Below are positions 1-3,699 of a stretch of DNA of 64,000 bases, piece by piece; position 1 is the stretch's first letter; each line of letters opens with the position of its first letter. The notes under the pieces were generated by a model, which was not told the origin of the DNA, did not search any database, and saw only the letters and a program-made list of their open reading frames with translations. Origin of the DNA: Basidiobolus meristosporus CBS 931.73. Taxonomy: Eukaryota; Fungi; Basidiobolomycota. A program made the position numbers and the translations under genes. The stretch covers positions 2,804 to 66,803 of the forward strand of contig MCFE01000493.1 of the NCBI GenBank assembly GCA_002104905.1, in the 5' to 3' direction.

Positions 1-915
1 ACAAGTATAAAGTACTGTGTTATCTTCTGAGTGGCTCTTAGCTGTGTACTGACCAACTGTTGCTTGGTTGTATACTCCAATCAGGCTTGCAATTATATGC
101 TTCACTCCTTTGGCTGGCGGTAGAATCTTCATGCGTTGATTTTGCTAAATTTGTATAATACTTTCTCCCACTGTTTTGAGACTTAAACAGAGTGATAGCA
201 CGTCTAACAGCTCCATATTTAGCTCCTGGTACACTGGTTTCAGTATCAAAACACTTGATACAATTATAGCATTCTTCTAATGGATTGTGTAGTACATATC
301 CGTACTCCAGGTGGATATATATGTATTATATATCATTGGGATCCTTACAATTCAGGAAGCTTGTTTCTGAGATCTTTTTCCATCAGTAGATAGTCCAGAA
401 TGGCGGCTAACAGCTCCAGTATTTGCATTCTCAGCTGTATTTTGAATGGCAACAGATTTTTGGTAAAATCCTCCTCCGGCAATCATTAATAATGATGTAT
501 ATTTTTTTTTGCAATTCAGGATAATATCCTATCCAAGAGCTTGTCTAACAGTCAATTGGGGTCATATGAATACATATTGCAGTATATTTCATTGTAGATC
601 TGGACCCTCAATTGCTGGAATTACGCAATTTTCTTCAGTAGTGGTAGAGCACCAACATACTATATTTCTTGACACAATTACATGCCAGTTTGATTGACTC
701 TTCTTCATAACTAACTTGGATAGTTACTGAAGGCATCTTTTGAAGGCAAGGCCTTCTTCTCCACAGCAATATCCTCATAAACATAGTCCTTTAGCAGCGG
801 TAGTCTTCTTTAACCTTAGCAGAGCAATAGTGCGGAAAGTCTTTCTCCAGACTAGCAGAAAAGGATCCAAAGCATAGTAGACACCAAGAGGACAGCAAGC
901 TCGGGGCTCATAACA
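1..915 (-). mobile_element. Degenerate internal region of a copia-type LTR retrotransposon (family B)
   Basis: PBS-like GTTATGAGCCCC (minus strand, ~903-914) abuts the LTR at 916. The remainder is AT-rich, CpG-poor and has no intact ORF. Confidence 0.55.
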
Positions 916-1264
916 TGTTGCAATATTCTGAGGAGTATTGGAAGTGATGTGGAGAACTAGAAGATTTACATGTTATTCACTTGTAGATTTATTGATCAAA
1001 AGTATGGTATTTATACTTTTGATAAAGTAGAGGAAACAAACGTGTAGAGTTTGTTAAGGAAGGTCCCAAGAATATGTGTGCAAAGTTTGGGGTCTTTTGG
1101 ACGACTTTGAGAAAAATAATAATCTGGGTACCTGACAATTTGGTGAAAATATTCTAAGTAAATCCCGACAAGAAATCTAGTCAGGACAGAATGCTAATCA
1201 CAGAATAAGATCTATGTGACTAAGTTAGCATGAATATTTAGGTGACAATTCAATAATTACAACA
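916..1264 (-). mobile_element. 5' LTR of copia family B, inserted into gag of a family A element
   Basis: TGTTGCAA...TTACAACA termini. Homologous to 48987-49333 and 50898-51246. Family A gag sequence begins immediately at 1265. Confidence 0.85.
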
Positions 1265-2198
1265 CTTAATTCTTCATCCAGGAGCCTTCCATATATGTAA
1301 TTTAAGGTCAAATCTTCAGTTCTGGACTCTAGGGCTGATACAAGGCCCTGAAACTTGTCTGTCAGGCTATTCAGGATGGTAACTATCACATCCTCATCAG
1401 TAGTTGGTATGCCCACAGATTCCATCTCATCTACCAGCAGGGTAATTCTGTTAATTAGATTTTTCATTTCTTCTCCTGGCAGCATCTTTGTAGTAAAGAA
1501 TTTTTGTCTCAGATACATTTTCTTAGCAGCTGAACATGACTGGTAGGTGTCTTCTAATGCCTTCCAGGCATTCTTTGCTGTTTTTGCTCTTGAGCATTGA
1601 ATTAGCAATTTGTCTTTAACATTAAGGCAAATGCAGTTAAAGGCACTTTGCTCTTTCTTCTGGTACTTCAAGGCTTCCTCTCCCACGTTTTTAGGAGGGC
1701 ATTCTTCTCTCATGACAATATCTCAAACGCCTCTTTCTTGTAGTAGCATCTTCATCTTCACCTTCCACACTTGGTAGTTAGATCCATCCAACTTTTCAGC
1801 AGAGGGAAAAATTCCAGTAATAGCAGTAGTAGACATTGCAGAGAGTGACAGCTTGGGGCTCATAACCTGTTGTAAGAGTCTTAGAGGTATGGGAAGTGAT
1901 TGGGAGGACAAGTAGATGATGTGGTTTTCACTTAATGATTTATTGAATGTAAAAGTAGTATTTATACTTTTACCTGGTCTTGGCATTACAAACATGTAGA
2001 ATAGGGTAAGGAAGGTCCCAAGAACATGTGTGCAAAGTTTGGGGCTGTTTGGACAACTTTGAGAATTTTCATGTTCTGGGTAAATATTCAAAGTAAATCC
2101 CAACAAGGAATTTGTCAGTATTCTCTAGGATTTGAAGGTGATGATCTAAGTGACTAAGTTAGGTGAATATTTAGGTGGAAATACAAATTTTTACAACA
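1265..2198 (-). mobile_element. 5' part of copia family A element (gag fragment, PBS, 5' LTR 1868-2198)
   Basis: Near-identical to 46427-47376. Gag has a premature stop near 1723. PBS GGTTATGAGCCCC. LTR has TG...CA ends and a 17-bp deletion. Confidence 0.9.
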
Positions 2199-2239
2199 AT
2201 ATCATGCCTCAATTGGATTAGAATCATATGAATCTTGCA

Positions 2240-2676
2240 GGAGTGAGTTAGGAGTTTGTTATGTGACTTTTGGCAATATTGCAAATGATTAGGAGAACAA
2301 GCTGATTATGCGGTCTTCACTTAATTATTCATTGGATGTCATTGTAGTATTTGTACTTTGGGATGGTCTTGTCAAAACAAAGATGCAGAACACTTGATGA
2401 TTTATTGAGTGTTACTGTAGTACTTTACTCTAACATGGTCTTGGCAAGACAAAGACATGCAATATGTTTAGGAAGGTCCCAAGAACATGTGTGCAAAGTT
2501 TGGGGCTATTTGAACAACTTAAAATATTCTCACCAAAATGTCAGGTACCCACAGCATGAAATATTAATAAGCAAATCCTGGCAAGGAATTTGGTCAGAAT
2601 TCTCCAAGATTTGTAGACAATAATATAAGCAACTAAGTTAGGTGAATATTAAGGTGTAATTACAAAATTTACAACA
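2240..2676 (-). mobile_element. Diverged solo LTR relic
   Basis: Shares the LTR core GGAAGGTCCCAAGAACATGTGTGCAAAGTTTGGGGCT and the ...TTTACAACA end. Left boundary is approximate. Confidence 0.65.
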
Positions 2677-3107
2677 TATCCAACCACCAGTGTTGGTTGT
2701 CACAAGATAATAAAGCACATTTAACAAAGATTAAGACATACAAATCATCTGCGACTTGGCTTTGGGGAAGAGTTTATCACAATGACCATGAACCAATACT
2801 AAGTGCCCTTTCCACAACATGAAATGTGATATCTACACCAAATATCCATTCAATATCTACACCAACCAATCCATCCGATAGCAGATCGTTATAGACAGAG
2901 CATGTACTAACAGCTACAGCACTAGATATATGGACTCTGTAGTTAGCCCGCACCACACCGCTCCATGCAGACCAAACCCCCCAATCAAGAAGTGATGTAG
3001 AAAATGAGAAGATTTATTCGGATCACGTGGTGGTAAACCTAGATGGGAGTGTTAGCAACGGTAGGGAAAAGCAGGGATTGTTAGGAGGGGAGGAGAGGGG
3101 AGGGATC

Positions 3108-3182
3108 GATCCATCAGCAAAAAAAGCAAGTTGGAACCATGTGGTGTGTCTTAAAGACTAATCGTAAAACCATCATTGGATC
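3108..3182 (-). ncRNA. Box C/D snoRNA, copy A
   Basis: Box C-like AUGAUG (3176-3171), box D CUGA (3117-3114), and a 6-bp terminal stem GAUCCA/UGGAUC. The 12-nt CGAUUAGUCUUU is complementary to conserved LSU rRNA AAAGACUAAUCG. Confidence 0.75.
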
Positions 3183-3290
3183 ATGGGCGTGGATGTGAAT
3201 GGGACCGGATAGAAATGGATGGTTTACCTACGAGAAGAAGGGGTTAGCTTGGGTCGAGCTGGATAAAGGGTGGGAACACATCGGTTGGGT

Positions 3291-3358
3291 GCTCAGTGTA
3301 AAGTGCAAGTTGGAACCATGTGGTACGTCTTAAAGACTAATCGTAAAAGCATCATTGC
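3291..3358 (-). ncRNA. Box C/D snoRNA, copy B (paralog of A)
   Basis: AUGAUG (3355-3350), CUGA (3296-3293), the same guide, and a ~53-nt core nearly identical to copy A. The terminal stem is weaker. Confidence 0.7.
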
Positions 3359-3699
3359 TGCCGTGTGGATAAACAATACATTGATACCATCCACTCACCT
3401 GATAAACTCCCGAGCGTCTAACGGAACGTGCAGCAGAGAGGACGAGTGGTGGGGTTTTTATTCCATCGGGCAGGAGGGGAAGGGAGGGGAGGGGAGGGGG
3501 ATATAAGCCGGGGTGCCGCGCCATGATTGGCCCAGCTGACGAATGGAAGCGGGTTGGAAATTGTTGAGAGACCAGTAGTCACCCATTCGCAACTCGATGG
3601 GAGAAAAGAAAGGAAAAAAAAAATTCACCAACAGGAAATAGTCAGTCCAGGTGGGTTATTTATGACTTGCGTTTTTACGAACTGTGCACGGTAGTTACC

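Follow-up and report, generated by a model that had tools for sequence, protein, structure and literature searches.

A locus in the fungus Basidiobolus meristosporus CBS 931.73 raises the question of whether two very short introns in a small snoRNA host gene can touch, with no exon nucleotide left between them, and what such an arrangement might be for. The locus lies on the minus strand of contig MCFE01000493.1; the stretch analysed, called the window here, comprises 64,000 nucleotides starting at base 2804 of that contig, and positions are given in its own numbering. A sequence-only reading of the window had placed there a series of splice signals running from a donor at 3398 to an AATAAA, all of which, with their coordinates, proved correct when the minus strand was read again. 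From these signals and from a comparison with Basidiobolus ranarum, we consider it probable that the host gene of B. meristosporus contains two abutting snoRNA introns with a zero-length exon between them.

Recursive splicing is best known from the ratchet-point introns of Drosophila and vertebrates, which are tens to hundreds of kilobases long and in which step-wise removal is tied to length. The Basidiobolus locus resembles them in that an AG/GT junction (the slash marks the splice border throughout) would regenerate a donor after the first step, but its halves are shorter than 200 nt, and the likely reason for the arrangement is the release of snoRNAs. The sequence-only reading had regarded recursive splicing as mainly a feature of very long animal introns, a view outdated since 2018, when zero-length exons were demonstrated in Schizosaccharomyces pombe and Cryptococcus neoformans; the present locus would add to these fungal zero-length exons already known.

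Table 1. Motifs and predicted features of the snoRNA host locus and its surroundings (positions in the window), and of related loci (positions preceded by a locus handle).
Feature	Position	Strand	Remarks
Remnants of copia-type gag	1225-2106	minus	Retrotran_gag_2, E = 8e-37; DUF4219
Putative last exon	2995-3038	minus	about 40 nt
AATAAA	3018-3013	minus	in putative last exon
TAG/GT at last acceptor	3037-3041	minus	B. ranarum: L001 622-626
Predicted intron 2	3039-3227	minus	189 nt; GTAAAC donor, snoRNA A, branch site, TAG acceptor (TAG ends at 3039)
Branch site of intron 2	3055-3051	minus	CTAAC within GCTAAC
Box C/D snoRNA A	3108-3182	minus	C box from 3176, D box ends at 3114; 6-bp terminal stem, GAUCCA paired with UGGAUC
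AG/GT junction, predicted zero-length exon	3226-3229	minus	intron 1 acceptor abuts intron 2 donor; TAG ends at 3228, GTAAAC starts at 3227
Inner composite signal	3247-3222	minus	CTAAC, 12 nt, TAG/GTAAAC
Predicted intron 1	3228-3398	minus	171 nt; GTGAGT donor (CAG/GTGAGT, G at 3398), snoRNA B, branch site, pyrimidine tract, TAG acceptor
Branch site of intron 1	3247-3243	minus	CTAAC within GCTAAC; branch A 16 nt before intron end
Box C/D snoRNA B	3291-3359	minus	C box from 3355, D box ends at 3293; 12-nt LSU rRNA complement
Putative exon 1	3399-3465	minus	pyrimidine-rich, without ATG, ends in CAG; 5' end guessed from an A-rich, TATA-like stretch
GGCCAATCA (CCAAT-type) box	3524-3532	minus	putative promoter element in the region common to the host and divergent RRP3; B. 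ranarum: L001 1135-1127
RRP3 (rRNA helicase)	from 3700	plus	adjacent gene, divergent from the snoRNA host
Tilletiaria anomala BOT1	L009 1576-1760		single 185-nt intron, one snoRNA
Tulasnella sp. 403 BOT1	L011 1035-1416		GCA_019632305.1; annotated as a single 382-nt intron
Possible halves of the Tulasnella intron	L011 1035-1261, 1262-1416		227 nt and 155 nt, meeting at TTTAG/GTAAGA
Botryobasidium botryosum BOT1	L007		two snoRNA introns with GAG between them
Amanita, Desarmillaria, Suillus and soil BOT1	L005, L006, L012, L002-L004		snoRNA intron, AG/GT, 62-70-nt spacer intron, 3-nt exon, then intron with second snoRNA
Suillus cothurnatus BOT1	L012 1330-1710		snoRNA intron 1330-1497, AG/GT, spacer intron 1498-1567, 3-nt exon GAT 1568-1570, intron 1571-1710
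Smittium BOT1	L010		no intron at the corresponding site
Single-intron model omitting GAG, Amanita inopinata	L005 2072-2487		
Single-intron model omitting GAG, Botryobasidium	L007 2083-2487		
Second BOT1 snoRNA, in the next intron	L003 5517-5687; L004 1080-1262; L005 2292-2487; L006 2390-2560; L007 2291-2487		different box C/D snoRNA

No gene is called at the snoRNA host locus in the annotation; another open reading frame of the window, of 420 aa, matches a protein of B. meristosporus CBS 931.73 with 100% identity. Each of the two predicted introns has its own set of signals (Table 1), and at the border between them a branch site, a pyrimidine tract and an AG directly abutting a GT donor follow one another, the combination by which a zero-length exon was defined. 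The expected place of an intronic snoRNA was about 50 nt upstream of the branch point, with 60-90 nt to the acceptor. SnoRNA B has its D box ending 65 nt, and snoRNA A 75 nt, before the 3' splice site. In intron 1, D box and branch A are 49 nt apart in either species; in intron 2 they are 62 nt apart in B. meristosporus and 54 nt in B. ranarum, in agreement with the expected spacing. Neither species has an ATG in its predicted exons, which leaves the host with no reading frame. In both, the presumed first exon is rich in pyrimidines, which recalls the 5'TOP starts known from snoRNA hosts of animals. At the last acceptor, too, the two species have TAG/GT, followed by poor donor sequences (GTTTAC and GTCTTC), so that AG/GT by itself is weak evidence.

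In a stwintron, an outer intron has its donor, its branch site or its acceptor broken up by another intron lying inside it. The stwintrons of filamentous fungi are like the predicted Basidiobolus case in comprising two spliceosomal introns removed by consecutive reactions from one intervening sequence; unlike them, the Basidiobolus introns lie side by side, each with complete signals of its own and none interrupted, and a stwintron was therefore rejected, in line with the sequence-only reading, which had set stwintrons apart.

The host is divergent from RRP3, and the GGCCAATCA box in the region common to the two lies upstream of the first donor, by 132 nt in B. meristosporus and by 138 nt in B. 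ranarum, where the same 9-mer is found. On the downstream side of the host is an AT-rich block (36-39% G+C over positions 1-3000) containing the gag remnants. A plus-strand open reading frame at 3270-3506 was rejected as coding: it overlaps the snoRNAs and lies in a region without protein-level conservation.

SnoRNAs A and B are paralogues with intact C and D boxes. Their 18-nt core occurs exactly twice in the window (0.02 occurrences expected by chance) and also twice in B. ranarum, upstream of RRP3 and on the opposite strand; between the species the snoRNAs are about 85% identical. The RUGAUGA-like C boxes read AUGAUGC, AUGAUGG or GUGAUGC, and in each of the four Basidiobolus copies the C box and the D box (CUGA) are separated by 63 nt. 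In B. ranarum, copy A has a terminal stem (5 bp, UUCAU paired with AUGAA) formed by other letters than that of B. meristosporus, a compensatory change; the B copies have a terminal stem of merely 2-3 bp. The guide CGAUUAGUCUUU is a perfect 12-nt complement of AAAGACUAAUCG in fungal LSU rRNA, where 10 nt or more next to a D or D' box were required, and another conserved element, AUGGUU(C), is complementary to the neighbouring (G)AACCAU (LSU rRNA letters were taken from a published fungal LSU sequence and a standard 28S primer). The AAGAC that follows the guide probably contains the D' box, since it is invariant in 12 of 12 aligned family members, including one whose guide has changed. By the fifth-nucleotide rule the predicted methylation target would be the last A of AAAGAC in LSU rRNA. 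A search of Rfam with the window, the B. ranarum locus and the three soil contigs described below (L001-L004) gave no family match at gathering or E-value thresholds, and this LSU-targeting snoRNA family appears to be uncatalogued.

If the inner sites are used, they ought to be kept in relatives, a check that the sequence-only reading had proposed. The orthologous locus of B. ranarum (L001, assembly GCA_040143965.1) was reached through the neighbouring gene and RRP3 synteny, RRP3 and the 420-aa gene sharing one 13.5-kb contig in that species; the comparison within the genus covers these two species. The end of exon 1, CAG/GTGAGT in B. meristosporus, aligns with AAG/GTAAAA in B. ranarum, and introns 1 and 2 measure 179 and 193 nt in the latter. 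The inner junction of B. ranarum is TTAG/GTAAAT, preceded by the branch site ACTAAT, with 68 and 75 nt from D box to acceptor in the two introns and, in intron 1, the same 49 nt from D box to branch A. An AATAAA comes soon after the last acceptor in both species (in B. ranarum AATAAAT, 16 nt past it). Intron base composition differs widely, at 46-47% G+C in B. meristosporus and 28-31% in B. ranarum, and outside the snoRNAs the host genes are 40-43% identical, near the level that unrelated sequences reach when aligned with gaps. TAGGTAA, at the junction, and AATAAAT are the longest stretches outside the snoRNAs in which the two species agree letter for letter. Thus B. ranarum keeps the branch site, TAG/GTAAA and the spacing, at a like offset and between flanks that are about 42% identical, which supports the earlier proposal of one intron per snoRNA, touching inner sites and a donor re-formed by splicing.

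The frequency at which such a junction arises by chance was estimated from composition-matched shuffles of the inter-snoRNA spacer of each species, the composite signal being defined as a branch motif, 6-22 nt without AG, and a YAG abutting GTA. It appeared in 0.07% of the shuffled spacers of B. meristosporus and 0.13% of those of B. ranarum; the real signals stand at offsets of 65 and 68 nt, respectively. Taken together, conservation and rarity bear, on the sequence evidence, the signature of selection acting on both inner splice sites, acceptor and donor. A looser version of the motif occurs three times in the window (0.86 expected), one of the three being an ordinary RRP3 acceptor, and AG followed by GT is seen at ordinary acceptors as well, that of RRP3 intron 3 being an example. 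To judge the inner donor, annotated proteins were threaded through both genomes, giving 17 coding introns, which range from 56 to 76 nt. The usual GTAAGT is a stronger donor than GTAAAC; the latter is acceptable, since the annotated donors of either species include some that lack G at +5 (GTAGAT, GTATTG, GTACTT and GTAACT among them), which this lineage therefore does not require.

The same observations bear on other ways of reading the locus. Both snoRNAs might lie in a single 360-nt intron and be cut from it after excision, with the inner sites unused, as in plant intronic snoRNA clusters, where snoRNAs are cut out of one excised intron. The outer GTGAGT donor and the last acceptor are indeed the strongest signals present, and comparable BOT1 regions of Amanita, Botryobasidium and Tulasnella are annotated as single introns of 382-416 nt. 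Unused inner signals, however, should decay, yet these are kept at a like offset while their flanks are near saturation; at 360 nt the intron would be longer than is customary in these genomes by a factor of about 5-6; and in C. neoformans an intron annotated as single turned out to be two. We regard a single intron as unlikely.

A short but real middle exon, created by another acceptor upstream or a donor downstream of 3227, seems quite unlikely as well. Candidate sites can be found: AG dinucleotides lie upstream of the branch site in both species (a CAG near 3260 would give an exon of about 31 nt ending in TAG), and B. ranarum has a GTAGAA 20 nt past the junction. None is conserved in position or sequence, the two-species comparison revealing no further shared splice site, donor or acceptor, in the stretch from one snoRNA to the next, and none is accompanied by a suitably spaced branch motif; past the junction, the sole candidate donor of B. 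meristosporus is GTCCCA, and C at +3 occurs in none of the donor set. It is very improbable that the snoRNAs are independent genes, or parts of a nuclease-processed polycistron, beside splice-like signals that arose by chance: donor, branch site and acceptor are each present twice, spaced from the snoRNAs as is typical of intronic ones, and both sets are conserved in B. ranarum, and no repeated promoter motif precedes each snoRNA copy.

With two abutting introns as the preferred reading, the locus would be a small non-coding snoRNA host transcribed divergently from RRP3, its transcript starting downstream of the conserved CCAAT box common to the RRP3 region. The primary transcript would contain two touching spliceosomal introns with one copy of the box C/D snoRNA each, about 50-60 nt ahead of the branch point of the intron in question, such that each snoRNA would come from a separate lariat, debranched and then trimmed to a snoRNP. 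The inner TAG/GTAAAC would serve as acceptor first and as donor second: intron 1 would presumably be removed first because it is transcribed first, and the resulting CAG/GTAAAC, which matches U1 slightly better than the unspliced TAG/GTAAAC, would then be joined to the 3039 acceptor. Removing intron 2 before intron 1 would lead to an identical product. As the factors binding acceptor and donor would overlap at an exon of 0 nt, the two reactions are probably sequential, not simultaneous. The leftover exon RNA, of about 100 nt, would be polyadenylated, as the conserved AATAAA suggests, and, having no ATG or reading frame, is probably short-lived or discarded. In having a single snoRNA in each intron, in its non-coding exons and in the fixed distance of the snoRNA upstream of the branch point, such a gene is like the UHG/GAS5-type hosts and the fungal hosts with one snoRNA per intron; both of these kinds of host have real exons between their introns, whereas the middle exon in Basidiobolus would be 0 nt.

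How the zero-length exon came about may have more than one answer. That a middle exon had shrunk to 0 nt, as the sequence-only reading supposed, stands as one possible origin. An equally zero-length border would result if an entire intron had been duplicated in tandem. This route is also possible and fits the fact that A and B are paralogues; it would take one step and be frame-neutral in coding hosts such as BOT1.

Two fungal cases published in 2018 provide the closest comparisons. In the non-coding RNA SPNCRNA.445 of S. pombe, the host of snoRNA61, spliceosome profiling revealed a zero-length exon in a 336-nt intron, which was proven by 5'-P and 3'-OH end mapping and RT-PCR and is conserved in other Schizosaccharomyces species (Chen et al. 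2018, bioRxiv 10.1101/226894). The Basidiobolus locus shares with it a non-coding fungal snoRNA host, a short intron split where an acceptor abuts a donor, and conservation in a sister species; the S. pombe case is experimentally shown and the Basidiobolus case predicted, and the paper names one snoRNA whereas in Basidiobolus each half carries a copy. Our search of the literature found no sequence or target for S. pombe snoRNA61. In C. neoformans BOT1 (CNAG_07884), 375 nt that the annotation gave as one intron turned out to be excised in two parts, of 210 and 165 nt, on either side of a zero-nucleotide exon (Burke et al. 2018, bioRxiv 10.1101/224170). The halves are similar in size to those of Basidiobolus; the host is protein-coding in C. 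neoformans and non-coding in Basidiobolus. Two extra 3'-end peaks in the CNAG_07884 intron were interpreted by Burke et al. as premature transcripts (bioRxiv 10.1101/224170); the peaks might instead mark the 3' termini of two snoRNAs within the intron. A study of vesicle RNA put intron and exon reads of CNAG_07884 at 66 versus 0.5, an excess that fits a stable intronic RNA. Neither report (10.1101/226894 or 10.1101/224170) links zero-length exons to the presence of more than one snoRNA.

The connection between BOT1 and the Basidiobolus snoRNAs came from a pattern scan of metagenome contigs, in which three soil contigs (L002-L004) were found to carry the same snoRNA family within an intron of a Bot1p-family gene (PF12298, E = 2e-18), which encodes a mitochondrial ribosomal protein; the closest proteins come from Agaricomycetes. 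For several genomes, the BOT1 locus was retrieved and the annotated protein threaded through it (the named Bot1 representatives numbered 30, with no Cryptococcus among them). The snoRNA family followed by AG/GT was present in BOT1 of Tulasnella, Amanita, Desarmillaria and Suillus as well as in the soil contigs, in the arrangements listed in Table 1. The intron position of C. neoformans BOT1 hosts the family together with AG/GT in other Basidiomycota, from which we infer that each half of the CNAG_07884 intron may contain a snoRNA.

The Tulasnella intron looks like two abutting halves, each with one paralogue of the snoRNA, the first copy having a different guide; this two-half design is like that of the Basidiobolus host. 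The single copy of Tilletiaria (L009) has CUUG instead of CUUU before AAGAC, a change in the residue beside the putative D' box, at a position that tolerates an rRNA mismatch.

For Suillus, evidence on the transcript comes from JGI contig Ga0484015_014643 (L013), which contains an uninterrupted 322-aa frame, is 97-100% identical to the S. cothurnatus genome, and reads AAAAAG-GAT-GGTAAACC across the BOT1 site. This shows that the Suillus 3-nt exon is used in RNA and that its surroundings are removed, evidence that covers the 3-nt exon and not the 0-nt site. Several further contigs encode the same extra residue. The 3-nt exon is included in the gene models of Desarmillaria and S. cothurnatus, and it is omitted from single-intron models of Amanita inopinata and Botryobasidium (GAG in both; Table 1) and likewise from the Suillus weaverae model (protein P0404; GAT); the models without it are probably small annotation errors. 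The second snoRNA, in the next BOT1 intron, has the conserved elements CAUUCGCGA and CAACCCCAU, just before the D box, and gave no Rfam match.

Recursive splicing in fungi was published in 2018 without a reason for it, and the Basidiobolus locus suggests one that can be tested: one snoRNA per intron. The supporting pattern is the occurrence of one snoRNA family beside AG/GT junctions in two phyla. The work also flags likely annotation errors in BOT1, where a 3-nt exon has been skipped, and adds a snoRNA family that targets LSU rRNA. We hypothesize, tentatively, that zero-length and 3-nt exons are a general fungal means of placing several snoRNAs at one intron site, because each snoRNA needs its own branch point and duplication of the whole intron is the only frame-neutral way of adding one. 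If this is true, it would explain the recursive splicing of both C. neoformans BOT1 and the S. pombe snoRNA61 host, and each half of the CNAG_07884 intron would contain a box C/D snoRNA ending at one of the two 3'-end peaks; a guide with CGAUUAGUC in one of those halves would tie the published case to the Basidiobolus snoRNA family.
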